The notes beneath the pieces were generated by a model, which was not told where the DNA came from, made no database searches, and saw only the letters and a list, made by a program, of their open reading frames with translations. Made by a program: the position numbers and the translations under genes. Below, piece by piece: positions 2,066 to 48,767 of a stretch of 64,000 bases of DNA (its first letter is position 1; each line of letters starts with the position of its first letter). The stretch lies in IMG/VR virus record IMGVR_UViG_3300023179_000009, positions 124,001-188,000 of that record. The stretch is one strand, 5' to 3'.

Positions 2066-2080
2066 TTTGGAGTATTAATT

Positions 2081-5000
2081 GTGCTACAAGAACGCCAGCA
2101 ACTTTTAAAACTGTGTGTTTCCTCTTTGGAAAAAAAAGGTTTTTCCGAGGATCAGAGATACAAAGACAGGCTCAAGAGAGAATTGAAAGAAATAGATGCC
2201 CAAGGAGAGCATGAGTATCTATTAAATTTACAAAATCAATTTCAATCAAAGGGATTGATTTTGCCTTATAATCAACATAATCTTCTTGTTTATTATCTTT
2301 TAGATTTGTGTAAAGATTTTGATATTGAAAAAGAATATGCTTGGTATCAAGGTGAGTTTCCAGATATTGATATCGATTATTTAAAAGATGTTCGTGATTA
2401 CATTAAACGTACTTGGGCCGCAGAAAATTTTGGTCAAGATAAAATTTGCGAGATTGGAACATATGGAACAAGTGGTATTAAATCGGCCATTTTAGATATG
2501 GCACGAGTCCATGACGCTGAAAAAGATAGAATTCAGGCTATTACAACAAAGATGTCCGACAAGGACGAAGATGGGCATGATTTAGAGTGGGAAAAAGCTT
2601 TAGAGACATACCCGGAATTTAAATCTTATTGTGAAGATCACTCAGAAGTTGCCGATGCAGCCAAAGCATTATTAGACAGAATACGCACAGGGGGCGTTCA
2701 CGCTGGTGGCTTAATTGTTGCTGATCGTCGTTTAGATGGATTTGTTCCACTTGAAGTTAGAATGGTGAACAAAGAAAATCCAAATGGGGTTATTTGCTCG
2801 GCTTGGACAGAAGGTTTGAACCGTCAAGATCTTGGCCCTGTGGGTTTGATTAAATTTGACTTGTTGGTAATTAGCAATTTAATGCAAATAGCCTTGGCTT
2901 GTGACCTTATAAAAAAAAGACACAGTATTGAAAAAATATGCGCCGCACCTAATCAATGGGATTTCTCCGATTTAAATTATCTCAATGACCCAAAAGCATT
3001 GGCCATGGCAGACAAGGGTGATTTAAAATGTATTTTTCAATTTGATAGCGAAGGCATAAGGAATCTGGTTAAACGTGGTGGGGTTTCTAGTTTTGATGAT
3101 TTAGCAGCTTACTCAGCCATTTACCGCCCAGGGCCTTTAAATATGTCGATGGACGTTCATTATTGTAAAAGAAAAAGAGGCGAAGAGCCTTATGAAATTC
3201 ACCCTTTAATGCAAAAGTCTCTTGCTAAGACTTACGGAATTTTGGTTTTTCAAGAACAAGTTATGGACATCTTGCGTGTTGTTGGTGAAATCCCAGACAT
3301 GCACACAGAGAAGGTCCGAAAAGCTATCTCTAAAAAGAAAATTAAAGATTTTATAAAATACAAAGAAATGTTTATTAAAAATGGACAAAAAAATTTAGGA
3401 GAAAGCGAAGAATATGTTGAGAATTTGTGGAGTACTATAGAAAGTTTTGCAGAATATGGTTTTAATAAAACTTTGACCGAAGATACTATAATAGATTGTG
3501 TTGATGGCTCTAAACAAATTAAACACATAGGTGTTGGCGACAAGGTTTATTGCATAAACGAAAAAGGAGAACGAGCAGAAACAGAAGTTGTAGCAGTTCA
3601 CGATCATGGCGTAATTGATGTTGTTGAAGTCACATTTGATGACGGGTACTCGGTGAAATGCACATTAGATCATAAATTTTTAACCGAAGAAGGGCAAATT
3701 CCACTTTGGAAAATTATTCAAGATAATTTGGTTGTGCTTAGTTCTCCGTTGGGAGAACAAAATGCCACAGAGAAAAAATTGGGAAGCAATTTGCGGAGAG
3801 ATTCTCGGCAACAGAAAAAAAATTATAGAACATCGCAAGAATTGTACAAAATGCAGAGAGATGTATTTGCAAAAGAGAACAGAAAAATACAATCACAAAT
3901 CTCATTGCGGAAAGAAATTTCCAACAAAACACAAACTAGCAGATCACTTGAAAGAATGTCAGGACTGTATTTATTTGAAATGGCGAGAGACAGGAAAGAA
4001 ACACATATCTCGATGCGGGATAGAATTTTTGAGATACAGTTTGTTGGCGGAACACCATCGTCATTGTGCGAAATGCACGGAAATAAAAAAAGAGAACATT
4101 CAAAATCGGATGGACAAGTTAAACAAAGACAACCTGTCTCCAGATCGCAAGGCTATATTTTCTGCAACTGCCAAGAAAACTTCGGCAAGGAAAGATGTTC
4201 AAGAAGCAAGATCTGCACAATTAAAAAGATGGAGGGACAACAACCCAGAAGAGTTTGCGAGATCTATAGAAAAGGCACAACATGCTCCCAAAAAATCAAA
4301 AATGGAAACGTGGTTGAGAAAATATCTGGGATGGAAGCCGAAGAAAATATGTTGTGGGAAAGACAGGAAATTTGTGGATTTAGTAAAGAAAAATATTTGG
4401 ATAGAGGTGGACGGACCGTTCCACTTTTGGCAGGTCGGATCAAAATCGAACAAAAGAGGTCACAATTTAAACTATGTTCAACTCAGAGACCAGATGCTCA
4501 AAGAGGAGTGTTTGAGGAGACAAGATATAATGCTTTTGAGATTGAGCATGACTTGTTTTCACAAAAAAACAGGAGAAATGAAGAAGGAAAGTTTGGATTT
4601 GTTCCAGACTATGCTCCGATCTCCAATACCGGGGATTTGGTGCATAGGAAAGTTCTACGAATTGTGCCCGTGGGCAAAAGACAATGTTACGATCTTGAAG
4701 TTGCTGTAAGCACACATAACTTTATTTTGCCAAATGGGGTTGTCACATCGAATAGCCACTCTTATGCATACACTTATATATCGGCAAGGCTTCTTTGGCT
4801 AAAGGCGCATTATCCTCTTGAGTTCTACGCTGCTATTTTGATGTGTGAAACCGATACGGATAAAATAAAAGATTACAAGATCGATGCCGAGAAGCATGGA
4901 ATTGAAGTTTTGCCTATTCATATAAATTATTCTAAAGAAAATTTTACTATTCACGATAACAAAATATATTTTGGTTTTTCCAATATTAAATCTATAGGAG

Positions 5001-6124
5001 AAGAAGTTGCAAAAAGAATAGTGACCAATCAGCCATATAAAAACGTAACAGACTTCCTTGATAGGTTCGGCACAGATTTAACTTGCATCAAAGCTCTTGT
5101 TTCTCTTGGTGTTTTTGGTGATAATCGTGTCAAGATTAGAAAATTTACAGAGTACTATAAGGGAAAAATAAACTCAAGAAAAGATAGAAAAAAAAGATTC
5201 GAGCAATCTTTAGAAAAAAAATTACAAGAATTAAAAGATTTGTTGTTGGAAGAAATTAATGAAAACGATCCTGATTTTCAATCTCTTTGCACATTTACAC
5301 CGGAATCTCAGTCTTTATGGGTGTCTCGATTTGAAAAAATTACAAGAGAAGTTGATTACAATTATCAAGGCAATAAAAGAAAAAAACAAGTTACTTTTTT
5401 AAAACAATTAGAAGATTTGGCAAAAAAAAGATCTAGTATAATTGAAAACTTTCATCTTAAAGAAAAAGAAGATGATGGTGTGGATTCTTATGAATTTTTT
5501 AATACTTCATCTATCAAAATAGACGATAAAGAAATTGATATCTTGAATGATGAGTTAATTATTGATGGCAAAAAGTTTTTTCCAAAAGCCGAATCTAATT
5601 ATTATGGTTTTCAATGGAAGCACATTTTAGAAACTTGTGATCAATACTCCGGAAAAACTATTGATAATTTTTTACAAGAAATTGAAAATCAAAACGACAA
5701 GTCCGGAGTTATACAAATTCAAGTTTTAGCCGTGAAGAAGAAAACCAGCAAAAGAGGCACAGATTTTTATAGCATGGAAGTTGAGGATGCAAACGGGAAA
5801 AAGGTTTTTGTCAATGTTTGGAAAGATGATTATCTAAGGTTTAAAGATAGGTTCGTATCTGGCGAGTTGTTGTCTATAAAAGTAACGCCGCCATCTGGTG
5901 GTTTTAGCACATTCACCTTCTGCTCTATTCCAAGACACAAACGCAAAGAAATTCCTGATAAGGAGTGTGACCAAAGATGTATTGTTCTTGAGCCTCCAAA
6001 ATTTGAAAATTTAAAGCCCGACACTGAAGAAAGAATCATGAAATTTAATACGGAGATTCTCAAGAAGCAATCTTCAAAAAACACCACAATTAAAACTGGT
6101 GGTTTTGAAATTTTTCAAAATTAA
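2081..6124 (+). CDS. dnaE: DNA polymerase III alpha subunit, lacking N-terminal PHP domain, intein-containing
   Basis: Catalytic FPDIDID, GVHAGG, GLIKFDLL, FQFDS, SAIYRPGP, YGILVFQEQVM, YGFNK|SHS, KAHYPLEFYAA and a C-terminal OB fold; GTG start with GGAG upstream. Confidence 0.93.
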   Translation: MLQERQQLLKLCVSSLEKKGFSEDQRYKDRLKRELKEIDAQGEHEYLLNLQNQFQSKGLILPYNQHNLLVYYLLDLCKDFDIEKEYAWYQGEFPDIDIDYLKDVRDYIKRTWAAENFGQDKICEIGTYGTSGIKSAILDMARVHDAEKDRIQAITTKMSDKDEDGHDLEWEKALETYPEFKSYCEDHSEVADAAKALLDRIRTGGVHAGGLIVADRRLDGFVPLEVRMVNKENPNGVICSAWTEGLNRQDLGPVGLIKFDLLVISNLMQIALACDLIKKRHSIEKICAAPNQWDFSDLNYLNDPKALAMADKGDLKCIFQFDSEGIRNLVKRGGVSSFDDLAAYSAIYRPGPLNMSMDVHYCKRKRGEEPYEIHPLMQKSLAKTYGILVFQEQVMDILRVVGEIPDMHTEKVRKAISKKKIKDFIKYKEMFIKNGQKNLGESEEYVENLWSTIESFAEYGFNKTLTEDTIIDCVDGSKQIKHIGVGDKVYCINEKGERAETEVVAVHDHGVIDVVEVTFDDGYSVKCTLDHKFLTEEGQIPLWKIIQDNLVVLSSPLGEQNATEKKLGSNLRRDSRQQKKNYRTSQELYKMQRDVFAKENRKIQSQISLRKEISNKTQTSRSLERMSGLYLFEMARDRKETHISMRDRIFEIQFVGGTPSSLCEMHGNKKREHSKSDGQVKQRQPVSRSQGYIFCNCQENFGKERCSRSKICTIKKMEGQQPRRVCEIYRKGTTCSQKIKNGNVVEKISGMEAEENMLWERQEICGFSKEKYLDRGGRTVPLLAGRIKIEQKRSQFKLCSTQRPDAQRGVFEETRYNAFEIEHDLFSQKNRRNEEGKFGFVPDYAPISNTGDLVHRKVLRIVPVGKRQCYDLEVAVSTHNFILPNGVVTSNSHSYAYTYISARLLWLKAHYPLEFYAAILMCETDTDKIKDYKIDAEKHGIEVLPIHINYSKENFTIHDNKIYFGFSNIKSIGEEVAKRIVTNQPYKNVTDFLDRFGTDLTCIKALVSLGVFGDNRVKIRKFTEYYKGKINSRKDRKKRFEQSLEKKLQELKDLLLEEINENDPDFQSLCTFTPESQSLWVSRFEKITREVDYNYQGNKRKKQVTFLKQLEDLAKKRSSIIENFHLKEKEDDGVDSYEFFNTSSIKIDDKEIDILNDELIIDGKKFFPKAESNYYGFQWKHILETCDQYSGKTIDNFLQEIENQNDKSGVIQIQVLAVKKKTSKRGTDFYSMEVEDANGKKVFVNVWKDDYLRFKDRFVSGELLSIKVTPPSGGFSTFTFCSIPRHKRKEIPDKECDQRCIVLEPPKFENLKPDTEERIMKFNTEILKKQSSKNTTIKTGGFEIFQN
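3470..4753 (+). mobile_element. Intein (428 aa) in DnaE with Thr at position 1 and an out-of-frame endonuclease gene inside
   Basis: Removing TLTEDT...VVTSN restores conserved YGFNKSH; block B VKCTLDHKFLT, block F CYDLEV, C-terminal SN plus Ser+1. Confidence 0.9.
3762..4709 (+). CDS. Vsr/DUF559-like homing endonuclease with N-terminal Cys/His zinc-binding repeats, nested in the +1 frame of the DnaE intein
   Basis: GGGAGA at 3751-3756 precedes ATG 3762; motifs SKMETWL, FVDLV, WIEVDGPFH, RDQML; HxxxCxxC repeats at N-terminus. Confidence 0.82.
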   Translation: MPQRKNWEAICGEILGNRKKIIEHRKNCTKCREMYLQKRTEKYNHKSHCGKKFPTKHKLADHLKECQDCIYLKWRETGKKHISRCGIEFLRYSLLAEHHRHCAKCTEIKKENIQNRMDKLNKDNLSPDRKAIFSATAKKTSARKDVQEARSAQLKRWRDNNPEEFARSIEKAQHAPKKSKMETWLRKYLGWKPKKICCGKDRKFVDLVKKNIWIEVDGPFHFWQVGSKSNKRGHNLNYVQLRDQMLKEECLRRQDIMLLRLSMTCFHKKTGEMKKESLDLFQTMLRSPIPGIWCIGKFYELCPWAKDNVTILKLL

Positions 6125-16443: not shown

Positions 16444-17019
16444 ATGGCTATAAATGGTAATTTTGGAAGGTATTCAAAGTTTGATGATAATTCAAAAAAG
16501 GATCGAGTCAGGTGCAACGAACAAATCAGAATACCTCAGGTTTTAGTGATTCATGATGGGAAAAATTTAGGGGTGATGCAAAGCAGATCAGCCCTACAGT
16601 TGGCTAGAAGTTTTGATTTAGATTTGGTTGAAGTTGCTCCCAACGCCAGACCTCCAGTTTGTCATATTATAGATTACGGAAAATACATGTATGACAAGCA
16701 AAAGAAGCAAAAAGAATCCAATAGTAAACAAAACCAAGTTAAAGAAAAAGAAATAGACTTCAGGTACGTTATAGCTGATGGGGATCTTAATACAAAATCT
16801 AATCAAATAAGAGTTTTCTTAACAAAAGGCTACAAAGTAAAGTGTGTTTGTAAATTTAGGCAGCGTGAAAATGCTCATAAAAATCAAGGCTTTGAGGTTT
16901 TCAAAAAGTTATTGGATTCTTTAAATGATATCGCAGCCGTTGAATCTCCGCCAAAACTTGATGGAACTAATATAGTTTGTCGTTTAGAACCAATTAAAAA
17001 TAAGTCAAAAGTATTATGA
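16444..17019 (+). CDS. infC: Translation initiation factor IF-3
   Basis: NEQIRIPQVLVI, DLDLVEVAPNARPPVCHIIDYGKYMY, KEIDFR, FLTKGYKVK. Confidence 0.95.
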   Translation: MAINGNFGRYSKFDDNSKKDRVRCNEQIRIPQVLVIHDGKNLGVMQSRSALQLARSFDLDLVEVAPNARPPVCHIIDYGKYMYDKQKKQKESNSKQNQVKEKEIDFRYVIADGDLNTKSNQIRVFLTKGYKVKCVCKFRQRENAHKNQGFEVFKKLLDSLNDIAAVESPPKLDGTNIVCRLEPIKNKSKVL

Positions 17020-19315: not shown

Positions 19316-20096
19316 GAAAAATAAGTTAAAAATTTTAATATTGATGGTTTATTATAATAGACCTATTTTGGTAAAAAATGCTTTAAGAAGTATTATAAAA
19401 TGCAATAATCATCATCAAAATTGGGTTCTTTTCTTTGGCGACGACGGCAGTCCCAATCCAGGAAAACCAATAGCAGAGGAAATCCTAGCAGATTTTAAAA
19501 ATCAAATTATTTTTGCTAATTCAAACGCCTCCCCAGAACAAAAAATACAGGAAGGTTTGGCGATAGGCAAATATGCAAATCAAGCCATAAAAAACTCCGA
19601 TGCTGATTTGGTTGTGACTCTTTGTGATGACGATGAGTTTTATCCTAATTATTTTTATAATTTAAATAATTTTTTTTTAAAAAATCAAGAAGTTCTTTAT
19701 TGTTATTCAAATATTATAACGTATAATCCTTTGTTCCAAAAAAGTGAAGACTCGGATTTTTTGTCGCACAAATACAATCAATATAAAAATCCTATAAATC
19801 CAGTTGGAAAATTAGATGCAACTCAAGTCGCCTGGAGGTCCGATTGTTGTAAAAAATTTGATGCTTGGTTCGCAGAAACTACAAAATTTATACAAGGCAA
19901 ACCATTAATTAAAGACACAGATCGCTCTTTTTTTGAAAATTTATATGATAAATGTGGGTTATGTCACCCAACTCATTTTATTTCTCAATATAAAGGCATT
20001 CATGACTATCAATTGTTATGGCACAAGAATGCACACAAAGAATCTCTTTTATCTTATTACAATAATTGCCAAAGACTGGCTGGAGAACTATTTTGA
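19314..20096 (+). CDS. Glycosyltransferase family 2
   Basis: YYNRP, GDDGS, LCDDD (DxD) GT-A motifs. Confidence 0.8.
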
Positions 20097-21175
20097 AAAA
20101 CTTGTATGAAATCTTGGGTCTTGAAAAAAGTGCCTCAGAAGAAGATATTCGTAAGGCTTATCGTGATTTGGCAAAAAAATACCACCCTGATTTAAACCCT
20201 AACGATCCAGATGCAGCAGAAAATTTTAAACAAGTTTCTCGTGCTTTTGAAGTTTTAAGTAATAAAAATTCAAGATTTAATTATGACAACTATGGATCAA
20301 TTGAAGGAAATGATTTTTTTGAAAAACGCAAACCGTTTTCCTCGGCTTTTGAAGATATGTTTGCTCAATTTTTTAATAATAGACCTCAACAAGTTTCCAA
20401 AGGTGATGACATATTTTTGGAAGCCAACATAACATTAAATCAGGTTTTAAGTGGTGATGAAATAGATCTTTTTTATCAGAGAAAAAATATTTGTGATAAG
20501 TGCAATGGTTTTGGTGGTGATAGGATAAAGTGCAAACACTGTAACGGCACCGGTTCAAGAGTAATTCAGGGGAGAGCGATGACCGTTAGAACCGGCTGTC
20601 AAGCGTGCGGTGGCACCGGCAGCGTTATAGGTGAATCTTGTTCCAATTGTGAAGGAGGATACACCAACTCAGAGGAACAAAAAATAAAATTCAAAATTTT
20701 CCCTGGAGTAGACAATCGAATGAGATTTGTTCAAAAAGGTCTGGGAAACCCTCCAGTTGATTCTGATGGTGTTTTTGGCGATTTGTTTATATCAATAAAT
20801 GTGCAGAAGCATGAATATTTTGAAAGATTACCAAAAGGAGACATTTTAATAAATTGGCCTGTTGGATATTCTGAACTTGTTTTGGGAACTCAAATAGAAG
20901 TTCCTACGTTGGAAGGACGAGCCATGGTTGTTATTCCTCCAAAATCGAATCCGAATCAAAAGCTAAGACTGAGGAACTTGGGATTGCCCATATTTAATAC
21001 CAGTGACACTATATACCAACGTGGCGATCAATACGTTAACCTTTCGCTCTACACACCAAATGATTTGGGTGACAAAGAAAAAGAAATTTTTACTAAACTA
21101 ATGGAGTTAGAAAACTCTTGTTTAAATACAAATAGACAAGAAATTTTTAAAAAAATAGGAGAAAAAAATGGATGA
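20093..21175 (+). CDS. dnaJ: Chaperone DnaJ
   Basis: J-domain with HPD, CxxCxGxG repeats, C-terminal domain; TTG start at 20093 with GGAGA RBS. Confidence 0.93.
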
Positions 21176-27089: not shown

Positions 27090-27803
27090 ATGGGATTTAA
27101 AAAAAGAAAATCTGCAAATTTAAAAAACGAAAAAAATAAAAACGCAAAAAACACCAAACCGATTAAAGTTCCTCAATCCAATTCAAATTTTCATATTGAA
27201 TTTAAGAATAAAATTCAAAACGAAGCTTGGGCGGCTTTTCAAAAATTTGATGTTCTTTTTTTGCTAGGATCAGCAGGTACAGGCAAAACTTTTTTAGCTA
27301 GCGCTTTTGCAATAGAACAAATATTAAATAATAAAAGAAATAAAATTATTTTGACTAGACCCATTGTAGAAGCCGGTGAGTCTTTAGGTTTTTTACCTGG
27401 AGAGTTTTCTGAAAAGGTGCATCCTTATATGATACCTCTTTATGATTGCATGGATCAAATGGTTGGATCTCATGGGCCTTGGAGAGAAAAAATAGACCAA
27501 GCCGTTGAGGTGGCTCCTATAGCTTTTATGCGTGGTCGTTCATTTTTAAATTCTATTTGTATTTTTGATGAAGCACAAAATGCTTCTCTTTTGCAATTAA
27601 AATTATTTCTTACTCGCTTTGGGGAAAATAGTAAAATTATCATCACAGGAGATCCGACTCAAAGCGATATTGGTAACAAAGTTGCTTTGGTAGATGTTGT
27701 TCAAAAATTAAGAGGACTAGATGGTGTTGGTGTTATAGAATTTAATAATGATTGTATAGTTAGACATCCTTTAGTTGGTAAAATAATTGATAGATTAGGT
27801 TAA
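27090..27803 (+). CDS. phoH: PhoH family ATPase
   Basis: GSAGTGKT, TRPIVEAGESLGFLPG, MRGRSF, IFDEAQN, ITGDPTQSD, VRHPLV. Confidence 0.95.
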   Translation: MGFKKRKSANLKNEKNKNAKNTKPIKVPQSNSNFHIEFKNKIQNEAWAAFQKFDVLFLLGSAGTGKTFLASAFAIEQILNNKRNKIILTRPIVEAGESLGFLPGEFSEKVHPYMIPLYDCMDQMVGSHGPWREKIDQAVEVAPIAFMRGRSFLNSICIFDEAQNASLLQLKLFLTRFGENSKIIITGDPTQSDIGNKVALVDVVQKLRGLDGVGVIEFNNDCIVRHPLVGKIIDRLG

Positions 27804-34672: not shown

Positions 34673-35566
34673 ATGGTTTCTGCAACTTTAAAATTCAATA
34701 AATTAAAGAAAAATCAAAAACATGCTGTTTTGACTGAAGCCGAACAGCGTCTAAAAAGAATATTTTTTCACGAAGACTTTGAAAAACCCGCAGAGATCAA
34801 AAAAATTCTTGGACCCATGCCAGATTCCTCAATCTTCGCAGAAGAATTAAGATCAGTAAGATCAAAATATTGTTTTGGCGGCAACAATTTTCAATCTCGT
34901 ATTTTTTATGAAAGTCCTTTGTTAACGAAGGAACAAGAAACTCATTTGTTTAAAAAATACAATTTTTACAAGTACAGAGCAAAAAAAAGATTACACAGAA
35001 AAGAAATCACGGACTCTCTCAGAGATCTTGTTTTGGCTGAAGACGTTAGAAACACTATAGCCGCAGCAAACCTGAGATTGTGTGTTCCCGTTGTCAAAAA
35101 GATGGGAGAAACCCAAAGACTTGATGATTTATTTTCAGAAGGCTGCGATTTGATCCTGAAGTCTGTTGACTACTTTGACCCAAACAGGGGTTTTAAGTTT
35201 TCTACTTACGCAACTTGGGTTCTAAAAAGAAATCTCTACAGAGCCTTAAAATCGTGGCGCAACTTTGAAGAAAGAAACTCTACTTGTTTGAACGAATCTG
35301 GCACCCAAGAAGCCGTTTTTAATCATGATTTTGAAGTAGTTTTTGAACAAACAGATAGGCTTTTAGTTATTAAAAAATTGTTGAATCTTTGCAACGAAAG
35401 AGAAAAAAAAGTTATAGAAAGACGATTTTTTGAGTCTAAAAAACTAATTGATATAGCCTCGGAGTTTGGGCTTTCTAAAGAAAGAATTCGCCAAATTGAA
35501 ACAAGGGCTTTGGAAAAAATGCACCGACAATGTGAACGGATTGGGATTTCTTTTGATTGCTTTTGA
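34673..35566 (+). CDS. Sigma-70 family RNA polymerase sigma factor
   Basis: Region 1.2 PLLTKEQE, region 2 AANLRL...DLFSEG...FDPNRGFKFSTYATW, region 4 SKERIRQIE; AAGGAGG RBS. Confidence 0.93.
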   Translation: MVSATLKFNKLKKNQKHAVLTEAEQRLKRIFFHEDFEKPAEIKKILGPMPDSSIFAEELRSVRSKYCFGGNNFQSRIFYESPLLTKEQETHLFKKYNFYKYRAKKRLHRKEITDSLRDLVLAEDVRNTIAAANLRLCVPVVKKMGETQRLDDLFSEGCDLILKSVDYFDPNRGFKFSTYATWVLKRNLYRALKSWRNFEERNSTCLNESGTQEAVFNHDFEVVFEQTDRLLVIKKLLNLCNEREKKVIERRFFESKKLIDIASEFGLSKERIRQIETRALEKMHRQCERIGISFDCF

Positions 35567-35589: not shown

Positions 35590-35853
35590 ATGAGTATTCC
35601 AAGTGATTTGTTTAAATGTTTAAAGATACTCCCATCTGACTACCAAGAATATGGTGGAGATATCAAAAGATGGGAGCATAATGACAAAAATTACCCCGAC
35701 TGCTCTAGTGGTTGTAAGCACTTTGTCGCACTTCAAGAACCTTTTAATTTTGATTGGGGTGTTTGTTCAAATCCAAAATCACCAAGATCTGGTTTGTTAA
35801 CTTGGGAACATCAAGCTGGTTTCGAATGTTTTGAGCAACAAAAAGACAATTAA
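35590..35853 (+). CDS. Small Cys/His protein (DUF3027-like)
   Basis: CSSGCKHF...DWGVCSNPKSPRSGLLTWEH; family recalled, not searched. Confidence 0.5.
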   Translation: MSIPSDLFKCLKILPSDYQEYGGDIKRWEHNDKNYPDCSSGCKHFVALQEPFNFDWGVCSNPKSPRSGLLTWEHQAGFECFEQQKDN

Positions 35854-35915
35854 TTATTCCATATTGACATTTTGAAAAAAATTATACAATACAACCAACT
35901 GTGGAGAAAAAACTA

Positions 35916-37511
35916 ATGTCCAATAGTAATATTTTTTCAACTAAAACCAAAAAAACTGGGTTTTCTACAAATACAAAAAACAATGCTGGAGGCGATGCTT
36001 ATGAATTTGATCCAAAACATTGTTTGGCTCAAATCGCTGCCACAAACACATTTAGTGGAACTTTTTATGCAACCGCAGAGCAAAATTTTAATTTAGCCAA
36101 AGAATCTGCATTGCGTTTGAAACACGACCCAGAATTCATTGCAAAAGTTGCAATTTATTCTCGTGATAAGTCCTACATGAAAGACATGCCTTGCTTCCTG
36201 ACGGTGTTGCTCTCGGATATTAGCAAGCCTTTGTTTCGCAAAGTTTTTCGTCGTGTGGTTGATAATGGGAAAATGCTTCGAAATGTTATTCAAATGGCTC
36301 GAAGTGGAGTTGTAACCGGAAAAAAAGTTAATGTATCGGCAGGAAGTTGGAGGCACGCCATACAAGAGTGGTTTAATACTCAAAGTTCTTCTAGTATTTT
36401 TAAAGCTTCTATAGGCAACAATCCAACCATGCACGACATTTTAAGAATGTCGCACCCAAAACCAAATTCAATTGAAAAACAATCTTTGTTCGCTTACCTC
36501 TCAGGCAAAGAATTCGATTTTGAAAAACTTCCAGATCAAGTTAAAAAACTTCAAGAATTTAAATCAGGCAAATCAAAAGATATCCCTGATGTCGATTTTA
36601 GATTTTTAGACTCTTTGAATCTTGGTCAAAAAGAGTGGGAAACAATCGCTATTCAATCTCCTTGGCAAATGACAAGGATGAATCTTTTAACTTTTGCTAG
36701 ACATAATGTTTTTGCAAATGAAGATGTTATTCAAATCGTGGCAAATAAATTAAAAGACAAAAAATTAATTAAAAAGTCTCGTGCGTTTCCATACCAATTA
36801 TTCGCTGCTTGGAGACAAGTTGAGAATCAAGTTAATTATTGGATACCTGAAATAATTAAATCATCACTCGAAGAGGCTATGGAAGTTGCCATCGACAATG
36901 TCCCAGAAATCCCTGGAAAGGGTCTGGTCTGTGTGGACTGCTCTGGATCCATGACTTCACCAATAACCGGTTTTAGAAACCACAGGAGTAACTCTAGTGT
37001 ATCTTGCAGCGACGTTGCTGGACTTTTAGCTTCAGCCATACATCGAAAAAACAAATCTGTTGAGGTTTGGACTTTTTCGGATAGTGCCAACATGGTTGAA
37101 TTAGACCTTAAAGACAATGTGCTAAAAAACACAGAAAAATTAAATCGTGCTGGCGGGGGAACCAATATATCGGCACCAATGCACCGTTTCAATTCAGACT
37201 TCAAAAACGCTGATTGGATTTTATATGTATCAGACTATGAGTCTTGGATTGACTCGCCATCTGCTGGTTACGGTTATAACTCAACGGGTCTGTCCTATGA
37301 ATGGGACATTTTTAAGAAAAGAAACAATCACGCTAAATTAATTTGTTGTGATTTGACCCCTAGAGATAACTCTCAAATTTCTGTTAGAAAAGATGTTCTT
37401 CAAGTCGGAGGATTCTCAGATCAAGTTTTTGATGTCGTTTCTTCTTTTGTTTCTCAATCTAAAAGCAAAGATTTTTGGGTTGAAGAAATAAATAAAATAT
37501 CTTTGGACTAA
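35916..37511 (+). CDS. Ro60/Rsr-like TROVE-vWA RNA-binding protein
   Basis: NNAGGDAY, GTFYA, KDMP, PWQMTRMNL, SRAFPYQLF, vWA VDCSGSM, GGTNIS, VSDYESW, VGGFSDQVF; GGAG RBS 9 nt before ATG. Confidence 0.92.
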   Translation: MSNSNIFSTKTKKTGFSTNTKNNAGGDAYEFDPKHCLAQIAATNTFSGTFYATAEQNFNLAKESALRLKHDPEFIAKVAIYSRDKSYMKDMPCFLTVLLSDISKPLFRKVFRRVVDNGKMLRNVIQMARSGVVTGKKVNVSAGSWRHAIQEWFNTQSSSSIFKASIGNNPTMHDILRMSHPKPNSIEKQSLFAYLSGKEFDFEKLPDQVKKLQEFKSGKSKDIPDVDFRFLDSLNLGQKEWETIAIQSPWQMTRMNLLTFARHNVFANEDVIQIVANKLKDKKLIKKSRAFPYQLFAAWRQVENQVNYWIPEIIKSSLEEAMEVAIDNVPEIPGKGLVCVDCSGSMTSPITGFRNHRSNSSVSCSDVAGLLASAIHRKNKSVEVWTFSDSANMVELDLKDNVLKNTEKLNRAGGGTNISAPMHRFNSDFKNADWILYVSDYESWIDSPSAGYGYNSTGLSYEWDIFKKRNNHAKLICCDLTPRDNSQISVRKDVLQVGGFSDQVFDVVSSFVSQSKSKDFWVEEINKISLD

Positions 37512-37512
37512 T

Positions 37513-37540
37513 TTGACAATTCGAAAATTTACCGTAAAAT
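37513..37540 (+). promoter_or_regulatory. Sigma-70-type promoter for the RNA cluster
   Basis: TTGACA (37513)-N16-TAAAAT (37535), 6 nt before the tRNA-like RNA. Confidence 0.65.
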
Positions 37541-37546
37541 AAATTT

Positions 37547-37634
37547 AGACAAGTAGCTCAATGGCAGAGTCCGTCATTGTAAGAAGGTTTGCACCTTTGG
37601 ACGGAGGTTGCAGGTTCAATTCCTGTCTTGTCTT
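37547..37634 (+). tRNA. tRNA-like RNA (Thr-UGU-like loop) with 17-nt hairpin insertion in the anticodon arm
   Basis: Acceptor AGACAAG/CTTGTCT, D arm GCTC-AATGGCA-GAGT, stem CCGTC/GACGG enclosing 24 nt, T arm GCAGG-TTCAATT-CCTGT; no CCA. Confidence 0.75.
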
Positions 37635-37636
37635 TT

Positions 37637-37702
37637 TAGCGGAATGCCGTTGTGGTCCACATCACTACTGGAAAGATGACTATAACAATAAGTTGTCCGC
37701 TA
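37637..37702 (+). ncRNA. Y-RNA-like RNA 1
   Basis: Terminal stem TAGCGGA/TCCGCTA, inner stem GTTGTGGTC/GACTATAAC followed by a bulged C (Ro60-site-like GGUC-C/GACU), 3' U tract; downstream of Ro60. Confidence 0.75.
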
Positions 37703-37718
37703 TTTTTTTTGTTTAATT

Positions 37719-37781
37719 TGAGGAATGCCGAACAGGTCTACATCAAAAGGTTTAATGAACTTGTTCAAAATTTTGTCCTCA
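37719..37781 (+). ncRNA. Y-RNA-like RNA 2 (paralog of RNA 1)
   Basis: TGAGGA/TCCTCA and GAACAGGT/ACTTGTTC stems; shares GGAATGCCG, GGTCyACATC and TGTCC with RNA 1; 3' U tract. Confidence 0.7.
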
Positions 37782-37797
37782 TTTTTGGAGAAAAATT

Positions 37798-38214
37798 GTG
37801 AAAAATAAAATTTATCTTGTTGTTTCTTTAATTCTGGGCTTATTTTTTGTTTTCTTTATTTCTAATTTAGAAAACAAAAAATCTAATTCTAATTCATTGA
37901 TTAATAAAAAAACTCAGCAAGAAAATAATTTTGTTGTTGAAATAAACAATAAAATAGATGAATCAAAAATTTATGAGATTGCCTATCAAAGAGGATACAA
38001 TTCTTTTATGAGACAAGTGGGAAGACCAGATCTTGTTCACAACGGCAACAATAATGAAAAAATTGAGATGTATACATCAAATATAATTGAAGAGATGTCA
38101 GAGGAAGAAAAACAAAAAATAGAAAAAATATCTGCCAAAGCTTATGTCGATGGATATCATAAAGCAGGCGATTCCACCGTTTGTCCTAGATTCAAAGAAG
38201 CAAGACACAATTAA
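37798..38214 (+). CDS. Membrane-anchored hypothetical protein
   Basis: GTG with GGAG RBS; N-terminal TM helix. Confidence 0.65.
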   Translation: MKNKIYLVVSLILGLFFVFFISNLENKKSNSNSLINKKTQQENNFVVEINNKIDESKIYEIAYQRGYNSFMRQVGRPDLVHNGNNNEKIEMYTSNIIEEMSEEEKQKIEKISAKAYVDGYHKAGDSTVCPRFKEARHN

Positions 38215-38927
38215 TTATCCAGCGGTCTTGGAATATAATTTTTTGGGTAAACGCCTTGTGGGTTGTTTTTGTCTACTATTGGTATTTTTCCTAGTAAACC
38301 TTCAACCTTATCGGGGAAAATATCTTTTTTTCCATAAATTACCAATATCCAGCCTCCCCATAATTTATTAAACTTGTCCATGCTCCAAGTTTGTATCCTT
38401 AGACTTCTGTCAGAGTTGTCTATAATTTTTACAATTTTATTTTTTTCGTCGTAGTGGCAAATCACTATGGCATGACCAGGAACGTCCATTAGGGCACCAC
38501 GACCCTCAGCCATTGCACGTTTTAATAATTCTATAGCTTTGATTTTGTTATTATAAACATTTTCAAATTTCACCCCAAAAGTGCTTAATTTAGAAGAAGC
38601 GTCTTTGGGGCCAGAATAACTTTTGCAACCCGGCCTGCTAGTCAAAGGATCTGGCTCTAAAAGTTCTTTTATCTCTCCCCAACGAGCCAAACACTCTAAA
38701 GATGAAAAAACACATTGTATACCTGTGTAATTTTTAACTCTGCAATCCATAGGTATAGGACACTGTACATCTTTTAACTCATCTTCATCCGGGGTTCCAG
38801 AGTCGTATTCTTGTGTGTAAGTTGTGCTATAGTTTGAATCCCAAACAGGTAGTTGGGAAAAATTTTTTTCTTTTTGTGTACAACCAGAGACAAAAAGAAA
38901 AAAGATTACAATTAAAATTTTTCTCAT
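38211..38927 (-). CDS. Lipoprotein with papain-like (C39-like) cysteine peptidase domain
   Basis: Lipobox FVSG|C; QCVFSS (Cys), PGHAI (His), IIDNSD (Asp/Asn); start at MRKIL with AAGGAGG. Confidence 0.7.
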   Translation of the reverse strand: MRKILIVIFFLFVSGCTQKEKNFSQLPVWDSNYSTTYTQEYDSGTPDEDELKDVQCPIPMDCRVKNYTGIQCVFSSLECLARWGEIKELLEPDPLTSRPGCKSYSGPKDASSKLSTFGVKFENVYNNKIKAIELLKRAMAEGRGALMDVPGHAIVICHYDEKNKIVKIIDNSDRSLRIQTWSMDKFNKLWGGWILVIYGKKDIFPDKVEGLLGKIPIVDKNNPQGVYPKNYIPRPLDN

Positions 38928-38998
38928 TACAGCCTCCTTGTGTAATACTCTAATATTTAGTATTATCAACTAATCATATTCCACAGCGGTACACGATT

Positions 38999-39976
38999 AT
39001 GTTTAAGTCAATTACAAAAGAACAAGCAAAAAACCTTGTCTTGGAAATACTCAAAAAATCTGGGAAGAGATTGAGTCAAGAATTACAAGGCGATAACGAA
39101 GAGTTCCTAGATCGTTTGCTGAGACAGTTCAAAACAAAAATTGCACGTTGTTCTTGGAAGAAATCACAACATTGGTGCAAGTGGGATAATGATGGACCAA
39201 TTCTTATGCCGGATTTTACTAGAATATATTACACAAAAGGAACCACCGAGGTGCTTGTGCAAGAGTTTGCTCCTCAAATTAGACTTCTAAAGTTTAAAAG
39301 TGATTTAGTTCTTAAGTCAAATAATTTTGATTTAATTGAAAACAAAACTGACTTAGCTAAAGTTTTTAATTATTCTTTATCTCTTCCCTATGTTGTTTTT
39401 ATTTTTAAATTTGTTGATGGCTTTTTTGTAGAGGTTAAGTGTTCTTTTTTAGACAAACCTCTTAAAAATTTACAAGAAAAACCACTAAAACCTTATTTGC
39501 CAAATATAGATTCTAATTTAAATGTTTGCCTGGGATCTGGCTTTGATAAATCTATGTTAGAAAAGGGAAATGTGACCCAACAATCAGCTTTGGTTTTAAA
39601 TTATTTTTGGAACTCTGTTTTTTCAAATGAATGGGCGGATCACTATTGGTATTATCGTTCTTATTTTCAGAAAGGTGATATTCGTTTGTCAAATTTGGAT
39701 TCTTGGCAGTCCAATTCTATGAACGATCCACTTTTCGTGATAGATGGCGTTAACTGGACGCACAATTCAGATTTTAACTATGGTGACACTATAGTGAAAA
39801 TGTTTGACAACGATAAAAAAAATATAGTACTACAAGAAGAACTATACCAAGAACTATCTGAAGATTTTTTGAAAGAAGTTGTTAAAATAATCAATGAAAA
39901 TATAGAAAATCTCAACAACAGACCTCCAGAAAATTTAGTTGATCAATTGGCAGACTACCTCGTTTCAAATATTTGA
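38999..39976 (+). CDS. Prokaryotic E2-like (PRTRC protein B type) conjugating enzyme
   Basis: SLPYVVF and PYLPNIDSNLNVCLG (catalytic Cys), FWNSVFS; first gene of the E2-JAB-E1-Ubl operon. Confidence 0.65.
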   Translation: MFKSITKEQAKNLVLEILKKSGKRLSQELQGDNEEFLDRLLRQFKTKIARCSWKKSQHWCKWDNDGPILMPDFTRIYYTKGTTEVLVQEFAPQIRLLKFKSDLVLKSNNFDLIENKTDLAKVFNYSLSLPYVVFIFKFVDGFFVEVKCSFLDKPLKNLQEKPLKPYLPNIDSNLNVCLGSGFDKSMLEKGNVTQQSALVLNYFWNSVFSNEWADHYWYYRSYFQKGDIRLSNLDSWQSNSMNDPLFVIDGVNWTHNSDFNYGDTIVKMFDNDKKNIVLQEELYQELSEDFLKEVVKIINENIENLNNRPPENLVDQLADYLVSNI

Positions 39977-39982
39977 GAAAAA

Positions 39983-40897
39983 ATGAACACTGAATGGACT
40001 CCAGATTTTCCAGTTTATGTTTATTATAAAGACATGAAACTTCCGGATAGTGGCAATTATTTTGTGATTGCTGGCAATGGTTGCTGGATGCACAAAGACA
40101 CAGGTTTGTGTAAGTGTTTTATACCAGTCGATAGAATTAGTTTTTTAGACGATCTTAAAACTGACCTAAGATTAGAGTTTAACTTGCCAAAAATACCACC
40201 AGATTTGGTTTGGCAAGTTAAACAATTTTTCAAAATTGTTTTCGATAATTTTTCGTCAGAGGCAGAGGTTAATTTATTATTTAATAAAAAAGAAAATAAG
40301 TTTAAGATCCATGTGCCAGAGCAAATTGTTAGCCACACTAGTGTGAAATATAAACGTTGGAGTTCAAACCAATCAGAGGATTTAAAAGATTATTTATTTG
40401 TTGGAACTTTTCATTCACATAGTGACTTTGATTCATTTCATAGTCACACGGATGTTCAAGATGAGACACATCTGGATGGTGTTCATTTTACTTTTGGCAA
40501 TAACGATAAAAAAGAGTTTAGTATAACTGCAAGTATAGTTATAAATGGATTTAGAAAAGAAGTAGATCCTTTAAATTTCTTACAAGGAATTCAAAATTCG
40601 GACCTTGAAGAAAGATTCATTTTTATTAATCATAAAAATGAAAAACAGGATGAACTGTTGCAAGAAGTTAACGATTGGTTAGAAAATGTAAAACCTTTAA
40701 ATAATAAGTATCTAAAAAAACAATACGCACACTGGAAAGACGGTATGTTTTCTTCCACCCTCAGGAACCATTTTGGCAATGGTCCTTTTGAGGTTTTGTC
40801 AAAAAAAGAAGACAAAATATCACTTAAATCATTGAATGGTGGTGCATTTGAATTATCAAATAAACTTTTTGAAATAAGGTCAAAAGATGGAAAATAA
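39983..40897 (+). CDS. JAB/MPN+ deconjugating metallopeptidase
   Basis: SEAEV (Glu) and GTFHSHSDFDSFHSHTDVQDE (HxH-x7-S-xx-D). Confidence 0.85.
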   Translation: MNTEWTPDFPVYVYYKDMKLPDSGNYFVIAGNGCWMHKDTGLCKCFIPVDRISFLDDLKTDLRLEFNLPKIPPDLVWQVKQFFKIVFDNFSSEAEVNLLFNKKENKFKIHVPEQIVSHTSVKYKRWSSNQSEDLKDYLFVGTFHSHSDFDSFHSHTDVQDETHLDGVHFTFGNNDKKEFSITASIVINGFRKEVDPLNFLQGIQNSDLEERFIFINHKNEKQDELLQEVNDWLENVKPLNNKYLKKQYAHWKDGMFSSTLRNHFGNGPFEVLSKKEDKISLKSLNGGAFELSNKLFEIRSKDGK

Positions 40898-41597
40898 TAT
40901 AGAAAAAATTAAAATCATAGGTCTGGGCGGAATTGGCTCCTATCTTTTAGATCCAATCTCTAGGTATCTGTCTTGCTCCGAAAAACAATATGAGATAACT
41001 TTTATCGATGGTGATTTTTATGAAGAAAAAAATTTAAATAGACAAAACTTTAGTTTATTTCAAAATAAAGCAAAGGATGCATTCGAGAGAATGCAAAGCG
41101 TTTTTAAAAACATTCACTTTAAATACAAGCCAGAATATGTAAACGAAGACAATGTGGTGTCTTTAATAAGAAATAATGATATAATATTTTTATGTGTAGA
41201 TAATCACTCCACCAGAAAAACTGTATCGGATAGGTGCAAAGAATTAGATAATGTTGTTTTGATAAGTGGAGGAAATGATTTAATAGATGGGAATGTTATA
41301 ATTTATATTAGAAAAAACTCAGTAGATATCACACGATCCTTAACGGATTTGGATCCAAGAATACACAACCCAAAAGACAGCAATCCTTCAACTTTGAAAA
41401 ATAATAGTGGTTGCCAAAATTCTACCCAATCCGAACCTCAATTGCTTTTCACAAATTTTGCCGTTGCCTCCACTATGCTGAACTGTTTTAGAAGATACGA
41501 AAATAACGATGTGAATTTTCATCAAGTTTATATTGATATACAAACTCTAAGAACTAGACCTTCACCAGAGGTAGAAATTGAAAAGAGGAATTTTTAA
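40887..41597 (+). CDS. ThiF/E1-like activating enzyme
   Basis: IIGLGGIGS, IDGDFYEEKNLNRQ, FLCVDN, ISGGND, candidate catalytic Cys in SGC. Confidence 0.9.
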   Translation: MENNIEKIKIIGLGGIGSYLLDPISRYLSCSEKQYEITFIDGDFYEEKNLNRQNFSLFQNKAKDAFERMQSVFKNIHFKYKPEYVNEDNVVSLIRNNDIIFLCVDNHSTRKTVSDRCKELDNVVLISGGNDLIDGNVIIYIRKNSVDITRSLTDLDPRIHNPKDSNPSTLKNNSGCQNSTQSEPQLLFTNFAVASTMLNCFRRYENNDVNFHQVYIDIQTLRTRPSPEVEIEKRNF

Positions 41598-46597: not shown

Positions 46598-46668
46598 GCG
46601 GGTGTGGTGTAGTAGTAACACGAAAGTCTTCCAAACTTTAGATTTCGGAGCATAACCGAATACCCGCT
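46598..46668 (+). tRNA. tRNA-Gly(UCC) with non-canonical D/T loops
   Basis: GCGGGTG/TACCCGC acceptor, AAAGT-CTTCCAA-ACTTT anticodon arm, D loop AGTAGTA, T arm TTCGG-AGCATAA-CCGAA. Confidence 0.85.
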
Positions 46669-46686
46669 CTTTGGAGTTAATTAATA

Positions 46687-48461: not shown

Positions 48462-48699
48462 AGATGCTCTTCTCGGCATCGGAACCAAAAAAGGATCGGA
48501 AGATTCTTTGGTCTATGATTATGATAAATGTGTAGAAATATTAATCGAGCGAGAAGGCATGTCGCACGAAGAAGCAATTGAGTGGATGGAATTTAATGTT
48601 GTAGACGCTTATGTTGGCCCGACTACCCCAATATTCGTTCACACGGACCCAGAATATACAATTCAATATATTCAATCTAATAGTGACGACATTGCCTAG
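48436..48699 (+). CDS. Conserved phage-type hypothetical protein
   Basis: ADGFEDALLG...VYDYDKCVEIL...GMSHEEAIEWMEFNVVDAYVGPTTPIF; 3' end overlaps tRNA-Cys. Confidence 0.75.
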   Translation: MLLQADGFEDALLGIGTKKGSEDSLVYDYDKCVEILIEREGMSHEEAIEWMEFNVVDAYVGPTTPIFVHTDPEYTIQYIQSNSDDIA

Positions 48700-48767
48700 T
48701 GGCGACGGCAACAGTCTGCAAAACTGTCGAGGAAACTCCATCGTGGGTTCGAGTCCCACTGTCGTCT
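48685..48767 (+). tRNA. tRNA-Cys(GCA) with long variable arm
   Basis: GACGACA/TGTCGTC acceptor, U73, ACAGT-CTGCAAA-ACTGT, variable region CGAGGAAACTCCATC, GTGGG-TTCGAGT-CCCAC. Confidence 0.88.

Follow-up and report, generated by a model that had tools for sequence, protein, structure and literature searches.

We analysed a 64-kb stretch (the window) of the 458.8-kb contig IMGVR_UViG_3300023179_000009, a UViG record of IMG/VR, in which a gene for a Ro60/Rsr protein is followed on the same strand by a candidate promoter, a tRNA-like RNA and two short RNAs of the bacterial Y RNA type, designated Y1 and Y2 (Table 1). A preliminary description of the locus had listed an intact TROVE-vWA gene, a TTGACA-N16-TAAAAT site within 2 bp of it, and then a tRNA-like RNA and two Y-like RNAs ending in U runs, and each of these elements was recovered in our searches. 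Related Ro60 loci and contigs are identified below by L-numbers, and the percentages given with them are Ro60 identities to the window protein.

Table 1. Predicted features of the window, in order of position, and tRNA-shaped RNAs of the third layout (see text) in related loci. ORF, open reading frame; R1, covariance model of short Y RNAs.
Sequence	Feature	Coordinates	Strand	Evidence or remark
Window	AAA ATPase split by an intein with homing endonuclease, then DNA polymerase III alpha subunit with intein splicing domain	38-6124		
Window	Translation initiation factor IF3	16444-17019		
Window	Full DnaJ	20066-21175		
Window	PhoH	27090-27803		
Window	Sigma-70 family gene	34673-35566	+	Pfam Sigma70_r2 and Sigma70_r4
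Window	Small conserved ORF, ~86 aa, between sigma gene and Ro60	35593-35853	+	
Window	Promoter-like site upstream of Ro60, TTGACA, 15-nt spacer, TACAAT	35864-35890	+	Regular-expression match; predicted
Window	Ro60/Rsr gene, TROVE and vWA with MIDAS, 531 aa, intact	35916-37511	+	Pfam TROVE and vWA_Ro60
Window	Sigma-70-like site TTGACA-N16-TAAAAT	37513-37540	+	11/12 match; predicted promoter
Window	tRNA-like RNA, normal (non-permuted) topology, no encoded CCA	37547-37634	+	Rfam tRNA match
Window	Y RNA 1 (Y1; short, YrlB-like)	37637-37702	+	R1 36.6 bits, E-value 7e-8; covariation
Window	U8 run after Y1, terminator-like tail	37703-37710	+	
Window	Y RNA 2 (Y2; short, YrlB-like; plan as Y1)	37718-37782	+	R1 40.5 bits, E-value 5.8e-9; covariation
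Window	U5 run after Y2, merging into GGAG ribosome-binding site of next ORF	37782-37786	+	
Window	ORF, 138 aa, hydrophobic N terminus, 3' of the cassette	37798-38214	+	ORF list
Window	ORF without family match	38211-38969	-	52-54% identical to L240 gene, same relative position
Window	ORF without family match	38999-39976	+	52-54% identical to L240 gene, same relative position
Window	Adjoining JAB-domain and ThiF/E1-like genes	39983-41597		Pfam
L003 (also L014)	Third-layout RNA	4870-4998		
L022	Third-layout RNA	1919-2041		
L051	Third-layout RNAs, three copies	4251-4370, 4488-4611, 4733-4858		
L059	Third-layout RNA	4372-4503		
L141	Third-layout RNA	4301-4423		

We assign the protein to the Ro60/Rsr family on the basis of several profile and structure-database searches. 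Its Pfam matches (vWA_Ro60, E-value 2.8e-12; TROVE, 1.5e-10) both exceed the curated cut-offs, it matches PHROG 850 ('RNA-binding protein', 7.6e-41), and 100% of its length aligns with homologues of 523-558 aa. More than 2,000 Ro60 homologues were found, with TROVE and/or vWA_Ro60 domains in the best 120, and the MIDAS (DxSxS) residues D341, S343, G344 and S345 do not vary among 40 homologues, of which the window protein is one. The nearest solved structures are Ro60 of Thermus phage phiLo, Xenopus and human Ro60, and Rsr of Deinococcus radiodurans; the matched PDB chains are 9kop, 1yvp and 2nvo, of which the phiLo chain 9kop is closest (E-value 6e-16). Myxococcus phage Mx1 provides the best cultured relative, at 39.7% identity.

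Y1 and Y2 start 126 and 207 nt past the Ro60 stop codon (TAA, 37509-37511) on the Ro60 strand and share one plan: a 7-bp closing stem, an invariant 5' GAAUGC opposite a 3' UUGUC in an internal loop, an 8-bp second helix, a loop that opens with CCACAU in Y1 and CUACAU in Y2, and a U run. Compensatory changes distinguish the two paralogues, such as UUGU/ACAA versus AACA/UGUU. Across 12 Y RNAs from six loci of the window clade, 97.8% of cells pair and 10 of the 15 base pairs are altered on both sides; pairing falls to 34-56% when the partner is shifted by 1-3 columns. A separate set of 43 short Y RNAs from loci outside the clade gave 93.6% pairing, with 14 of 15 pairs altered on both sides; for the closing stem, the corresponding counts are 5 of 7 pairs in the clade and 6 of 7 in the other set. 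We built a covariance model, R1, from these 43 RNAs, excluding the window and its close relatives, and searched both strands of the 64 kb with it. R1 returned exactly two matches, Y2 and Y1.

The Y motif is found on the Ro60 strand in most of 148 loci, in 1-12 copies, and almost never on the opposite strand. About 200 distinct closing-stem RNAs were extracted from related loci, and their lengths are bimodal: a class of 55-77 nt comprises plain hairpins, and a class of 105-145 nt is of the YrlA type, with a T arm, a closed acceptor-like stem-loop and a D arm. Y1 and Y2, 65-66 nt in length and with a plain loop, contain no T-loop motif. Rfam reported no match to either RNA at gathering scores or at E-values up to 10; its YrlA model is blind to them because the tRNA-like domain, which makes up most of that model, is absent from them. 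Searches with R1 around Ro60 of Myxococcus phage Mx1 and of the uncultured phage LR745206 gave no match, and neither did those within 2.5 kb of Ro60 in L007, L009, L010, L019 and L154; thus, not every relative keeps Y RNAs beside the gene.

YrlA and YrlB RNAs contain the motif GNCGAAN0-1G near their 5' end, the likely Ro60 contact, followed by YUAY ~10 nt later (PMC4201824). The counterpart of the first motif in the window is GCGGAAUG in Y1 and GAGGAAUG in Y2, with GAAUG invariant. The sequence ~10 nt after GAANG is CUAC in Y2; for Y1 it is CCAC in the window, and its relatives have CUAC or UUAC. We had initially assigned the Ro60 site to an inner UGGUC/GACUA helix by analogy with human Y RNAs, and replaced this assignment by the closing stem and GAAUG after comparison with PMC4201824. 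Y1 and Y2 are placed in the bacterial Y RNA superfamily, as predicted YrlB-like RNAs rather than YrlA proper.

The RNA that precedes them matches the Rfam tRNA model with 43.7 bits (gathering score 29; E-value 5.5e-6 for the whole window); compared with the model, its anticodon loop contains 21 additional nt. It has a 7-bp acceptor stem, U8, A9, A14, a 4-bp D stem with GG in the loop, a 5-nt variable region and a 5-bp T stem with the loop UUCAAUU. The strands of its 5-bp anticodon stem lie 24 nt apart and are separated by AUUGUAAG, a 5-bp hairpin capped by UUGC, and UG; a canonical 7-nt anticodon loop on a 5-bp stem is absent. In six loci, all 26 pairs are 100% paired and five are altered on both sides, a result equalled in 0 of 500 shuffles, and three of these five double-sided changes fall in the inserted hairpin. 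The unpaired loop AUUGUAAG (37576-37583) is invariant in five of the six loci, with covarying flanking helices, and could be either a leftover of ancestry or a binding site. It reads AUUGUAA, resembling the anticodon loop of tRNA-Thr(UGU). A pairing of the AUUGUAAG loop with YUACAU was considered and dropped as too weak, and the variant in L002 gives it no support.

The tRNA-like RNA is 82-97% identical to its relatives, compared with 69-95% for the Ro60 coding sequence, and its 'anticodon', UGU in five loci, reads UGC in L002, where the acceptor stem is identical. Being more conserved than the Ro60 coding sequence and having a variable 'anticodon', it is under selection as an RNA and not as a decoder, and we thus regard it as a putative tRNA mimic rather than a decoding tRNA. 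ARAGORN called positions 37547-37634 as 'Thr tgt', and labelled the tRNA-like RNAs Thr, Ala, Leu or Val with 'introns'; these labels proved unreliable once the sequences were read.

We next consider how the cassette may be transcribed. The TTGACA hexamer (37513-37518) begins 1 nt past the Ro60 stop codon and is separated by a 16-nt spacer from TAAAAT (37535-37540), whose end lies 6 nt from the first base of the tRNA-like RNA (37547). This site scores best in 4 kb. As a class, promoter-like sites are not enriched (11 found versus 12.2 +/- 3.8 in shuffles), and support for this one therefore comes from conservation: its position relative to the tRNA-like RNA is kept in L002, L149 and L150. A promoter belonging to the cassette, as first proposed, is thus not a general feature: L151 and L153 lack the site. 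U runs of 6-10 follow Y1 in L002, L149, L150 and L151, and the U run after Y2 is conserved in relatives.

Our survey of synteny in relatives showed that the trio of RNAs recurs after Ro60 in L002 (84%), L149 (96%), L150 (88%), L151/L152 (68%) and L153 (67%). Loci with 43-61% Ro60 identity contain, directly 5' of Y RNAs, tRNA-shaped RNAs whose acceptor stems are open and whose anticodon arms cannot decode. There are two such units in L042, with anticodon arms capped by GCAA; one each in L008 and L062; four in tandem, with D-loop insertions, in L157; and four and seven in L155 and L156, where some are followed by other hairpins and the last ones by Y RNAs. The arm is capped by GAAA in L015/L016 and in L148; in L148 no Y RNA follows directly, and the next R1 match lies ~45 nt downstream. 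The gap between discriminator and Y stem measures 1-3 nt, mostly N-(C/U)-U-U, in L003, L008, L015, L042, L062, L155, L156 and L157.

Other loci have true tRNAs of canonical length, with CCA, ahead of Y RNAs, ending 13-20 nt before AAUG; in cellular and more distant loci these are tRNAs for Met, Asn, Cys and Lys. We examined 80 loci from cellular genomes, mostly of Acidobacteriota (Pyrinomonadaceae), whose Ro60 identity does not exceed 47% except on one 1.5-kb contig. Only canonical-length tRNAs precede Y RNAs there (mostly 70-74 nt, four of 83-87 nt), with a tRNA-to-AAUG gap of 13-20 nt; CCA is encoded in 20 of 29 such tRNAs and not in the other nine. The cellular relatives (L160-L239, among them the complete Pyrinomonadaceae chromosomes L162, L176 and L203; and L023, L025, L028; 42-47%) have arrays upstream of Ro60 that are made up of YrlA-type RNAs in alternation with ordinary tRNAs for Met, Asn and Cys, the majority of which encode CCA.

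A third layout is represented by tRNA-shaped RNAs with an open acceptor stem that have the Ro-binding motif in their anticodon arm (Table 1). The order of the motif is reversed in these RNAs, which read UUGU, stem, loop, stem, AAUG, YUACAU, and they correspond to YrlA with the circular permutation undone. The clade thus has three topologies: permuted YrlA, a tRNA topology with a built-in Ro motif, and a plain mimic with separate Y RNAs. The viral contig L118 (4250-6320) has about a dozen Y motifs in a row downstream of Ro60, in short and tRNA-domain forms. Behind the small RNAs, very large RNAs within a frame of tRNA acceptor, D and T arms are seen at approximately L155:5000-5290 and L156:5420-5930, with inserts of ~300-450 nt at the anticodon-arm position; Rfam matched nothing there at gathering scores.

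We compared the locus to systems for which Ro60 and Y RNAs have been characterized. Ro60 and Y RNAs are conserved from bacteria to humans. Like the loci for YrlA and YrlB of Salmonella Typhimurium and Mycobacterium smegmatis (PMC4201824), the window has more than one Y RNA on the same strand beside Ro60, 5' and 3' ends paired in a stem with a GAANG-type motif and YUAY, and a tRNA-like module in the locus. YrlA differs in that its tRNA-like domain lies inside the Y RNA, and is circularly permuted: a loop closes its acceptor stem, and the RNA ends are located in the Ro-binding stem. The tRNA-like RNA of the window, by contrast, is a separate unit of normal topology whose acceptor stem is open, and a tRNA domain is missing from both Y RNAs. 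The Rfam YrlA model RF02553 matches the classical YrlA of L025 with 70.6 bits and does not match the window, in line with the initial remark that the layout departs from permuted YrlA. The YrlA of M. smegmatis is cut by RNase P and then receives CCA (PMC4201824), which provides a precedent for an open acceptor end on a tRNA mimic associated with Ro60.

Phage Ro60 genes with Y-like RNAs have been described in 22 phages, mycobacteriophages (PMC4201824), and phage G and CcrColossus are named as further Ro60 phages (PMC12135203). The Ro60 of phiLo, described in 2025, binds two phage Y-like RNAs and host PNPase (PMC12135203); phiLo thus shares with the window a phage Ro60 and two short Y-like RNAs near the gene, but its RNAs are encoded upstream of the gene, a tRNA-like RNA is not reported for it, and the relationship between the two proteins is only distant. 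TROVE proteins 'with a tRNA-like partner' have been noted in jumbo phages (PMC7824862). Recruitment of an exoribonuclease by Ro60 and Y RNA has been shown in D. radiodurans and Salmonella, and in vitro for phiLo (PMC4201824, PMC12135203). In the D. radiodurans Rsr-Yrn1-PNPase complex (RYPER), the model is likewise of a Y RNA that tethers the Ro60 ring to the exoribonuclease and gates the ring, but Yrn1 is a single larger RNA.

A tRNA look-alike beside Rsr, b7a-tRNA, was predicted earlier (Burroughs and Aravind 2016, as quoted in 10.1101/312249); in that quoted description, its defining feature is that it is linked to a Band-7 protein and RtcB. No Pfam match to Band_7 or RtcB was obtained in the 41 window ORFs scanned, whereas the related contigs L240/L155, L156 and L008 do possess a major vault protein (MVP) homologue after their RNA array. 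MALAT1/mascRNA and tRNA-linked viral small RNAs also have a tRNA-shaped element beside a non-coding RNA, with tRNA processing setting the end of the neighbour; they are eukaryotic or herpesviral, and such processing is only putative in the window. In the literature we found no account of mimics that lack an anticodon loop and are fused to short Y RNAs, of such units in arrays, or of a YrlA in tRNA topology; Burroughs and Aravind 2016 and the Wolin-lab reviews lie outside this comparison, so part of this may be in print. Phage Ro60 with Y RNAs is already known, and what is different here is a normal-topology mimic that lacks an anticodon loop and is separate from short Y RNAs, in the place of the permuted YrlA.

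Together, we consider it probable that the window encodes a phage Ro60 ribonucleoprotein module in which the two functional parts of YrlA are made as separate RNAs. Host RNA polymerase would start at the sigma-70-like site, at or next to position 37547, and read through Y1 and Y2, with the U runs after the Y closing stems serving as leaky terminators. The tRNA-like RNA would fold into an L shape and be recognized by the host tRNA 3'-end machinery, and RNase P could act where a leader exists (L151, L153). An RNase Z-type cut after the discriminator would free the mimic and place the Y1 5' end two nt before its stem; such cleavage would fit a CCA-less tRNA shape followed by U, which is the base after the discriminator throughout the window clade. 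Y1 and Y2 would bind phage Ro60 via the GAAUG-containing module and, by analogy with other Ro60 systems, may gate its ring and tether it to a host 3'-5' exoribonuclease. Decay and quality control of structured RNA could thereby be reshaped during infection, and the free tRNA mimic would provide in trans what the YrlA tRNA domain provides in cis. The tight junction between tRNA-like RNA and Y RNA suggests that tRNA-processing enzymes may mature Y RNAs in phages, in parallel to reports on human RNase Z (ELAC1), which is associated with Y RNAs and cleaves vault RNAs (PMC13692180).

Several observations weigh against this reading. The tRNA-like RNAs of L151 and L153 lack a promoter-like site of their own; in L151 a 58-aa ORF lies ahead of the cassette, and in L153 the tRNA-like RNA begins 6 nt past the Ro60 stop codon. 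L153 moreover has ~40 nt with a separate promoter-like site between the tRNA-like RNA and Y1, and its Y1 would therefore not need processing at the tRNA-like RNA. The Ro60 motif in the window is GGAAUG instead of CGAAUG; this C-to-G change is matched by a G-to-C change in the 3' partner (UUGUCG to UUGUCC), and the pair is kept. Folding energies are no better than those of shuffled sequences (z -1.29, -2.26 and -0.55; whole cassette -0.30). In many distant relatives a C follows the discriminator (CUU). Work on Bacillus subtilis RNase Z indicates that a C at this position disfavours cleavage, which would favour an uncleaved fusion. Finally, PNPase, RtcB and RNA ligase were not seen by Pfam in the 41 ORFs scanned, which derive from 64 kb of the 458.8-kb contig. 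The preliminary description had envisaged a system that redirects RNA decay or protects and repairs RNAs attacked by host anticodon nucleases: a Ro60 RNA-protein module is indeed present, and the absence of RtcB and RNA ligase from the scanned ORFs leaves the repair and anticodon-nuclease role without support in the window.

It is less likely, yet worth serious consideration, that the tRNA-like RNA and Y1 stay together as one RNA of ~156 nt, an analogue of YrlA with the tRNA domain joined by the 3' end of its acceptor and not by the anticodon stem. The linker is fixed at 1-3 nt in at least nine lineages, compared with CCA plus 3-7 nt after true tRNAs, and the C after the discriminator in many relatives points in the same direction. 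L003, L022, L051, L059 and L141 embed the Ro-binding motif within a tRNA-shaped RNA, from which physical linkage is seen to be under selection. Evidence against a fusion comes from L153, where the two RNAs are ~40 nt apart with a promoter-like site between them, from the U that follows the discriminator in the window clade, and from the U run after the tRNA-like RNA.

The tRNA-like RNA could also be a mere processing or punctuation handle, derived from a tRNA that formerly lay ahead of the Y RNAs, and without a role once cut off. True tRNAs directly precede Y RNAs in cellular and distant loci, and tRNA-like handles are known to mature neighbouring RNAs elsewhere, as with the MALAT1 mascRNA (cited in 10.1101/312249). 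Yet the tRNA-like RNA is more conserved than the Ro60 coding sequence, its non-helical AUUGUAAG loop included, and it is kept in L153, whose Y1 has its own promoter-like site, which renders this explanation unlikely.

A function as a decoy or sponge for host tRNA factors, such as defence nucleases, toxins that modify the acceptor end or tRNA-modifying enzymes, would account for the full set of elbow and acceptor features and for the tRNA-Thr(UGU)-like loop AUUGUAA, kept in five of six loci; jumbo phages do carry many counter-measures against tRNA attack (PMC7824862). We found no linked defence or counter-defence gene, however, and the anticodon arms of relatives are capped by GNRA or other loops, so that an anticodon-loop decoy is not a general role. 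We therefore view a decoy as improbable.

We regard as very improbable a genuine tRNA-Thr(UGU) gene whose 17-nt intervening hairpin would be either removed or tolerated. The ARAGORN call and the fit of AUUGUAA to a tRNA-Thr(UGU) anticodon loop speak for it. To our knowledge, there is no bacterial route for removing a 17-nt insert. The inserted hairpin covaries and is thus selected as a structure, the 'anticodon' of L002 is UGC on an unchanged acceptor stem, and this stem starts with A1-U72/G2-C71, unlike the G1-C72/C2-G71 identity pairs of threonyl-tRNA synthetase. That Y1 and Y2 serve the Ro60 gene only as terminators or attenuators, as their terminal U runs might imply, is disfavoured to the point of being barely credible, given two tandem copies after a promoter-like site and features atypical of terminators (conserved unpaired GAAUGC, YUACAU and UUGUC, a second helix, matches to an independent model).

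The setting of the cassette in related genomes raises a broader and more tentative possibility. Megaphages of the clade may use an RNA class of which we found no description, in which normal-topology tRNA mimics without an anticodon loop are fused to short Y RNAs that follow after 1-3 nt, either singly or as arrays with up to seven units; YrlA would here have been taken apart for host tRNA-processing enzymes, and the window, with one mimic and two Y RNAs, would be the minimal version. In syntenic relatives the larger arrays lie between Ro60, a TROVE protein, and an MVP homologue, and the cassette could therefore be the RNA part of a vault-like phage particle, reduced in the window lineage. We place the chance of this extended proposal below even. 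With the tRNA mimic and the putative Ro60-binding hairpins apart in this locus, binding, processing and partners can be studied for each by itself, and the series of permuted YrlA, motif within a tRNA topology, and separate mimic and Y RNAs offers natural variants on which to ask which linkage matters.

In three related contigs (L240:10001-15528, the contig of L155; L156:2501-6608; L008:2501-6598), a protein of ~910 aa is encoded after Ro60 and the RNA array. It has the Pfam domains MVP_shoulder and Vault_3 and matches the eukaryotic major vault protein chains 7pkz and 4hl8 over ~290 residues (E-value 2e-11). The fold of the MVP shoulder is SPFH-like. The three components of vaults, namely a TROVE protein, small RNAs and MVP, are thus found side by side in a megaphage-like genome, which is relevant to how vault particles originated. 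No MVP homologue is present in the window; the genes downstream of the MVP homologue are syntenic with window positions 38211-41597, at 41-54% identity. We considered whether the 138-aa ORF behind the cassette could be a remnant of an MVP gene and rejected this on comparison.

Transcription from the cassette may continue into this 138-aa ORF, and genes for 108-138 aa occupy the equivalent downstream position in L149, L150 and L153. Neither it nor the two ORFs that follow (38211-38969 and 38999-39976) match PHROG or Pfam; the synteny with L240 makes the latter two conserved neighbours of the Ro60/RNA region. The JAB and ThiF/E1-like genes beyond them are conserved beside the Ro60 region of L240 as well, and the two may act as a pair in ubiquitin-like conjugation or deconjugation. 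On the upstream side, the sigma-70 gene shows conserved synteny, being present upstream of Ro60 also in L149, L150, L153, L154, L156 and the P0008 contig. The small ORF between it and Ro60 has no Pfam or PHROG match and has counterparts of 81-87 aa at the equivalent position in L149, L150 and the P0008 contig. A promoter-like site upstream of Ro60 comparable to that of the window is found in L149 and L150 (TTGACA-15-TATACT/TATAAT).

The window has a GC content of ~32%, and no DNA match to 4 kb of it was found among 50,697 phage records. Those of its genes that can be named, several glycosyltransferase genes among them, fit a huge phage, and most ORFs have no family in Pfam and PHROG scans. No structural phage genes were found in the 64 kb, and the 'phage' label therefore rests on the IMG/VR assignment and gene content. 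The match of the DNA polymerase III alpha subunit begins at profile position 100, and the N-terminal part is thus seemingly missing or encoded elsewhere. The window has three ordinary tRNAs, all without an encoded CCA. A tRNA-Gly(UCC) at 46598-46669 has an unusual T loop, GGAGCAUAACC, and a tRNA-Cys(GCA) at 48685-48767 has an insert of ~11 nt in its variable region.

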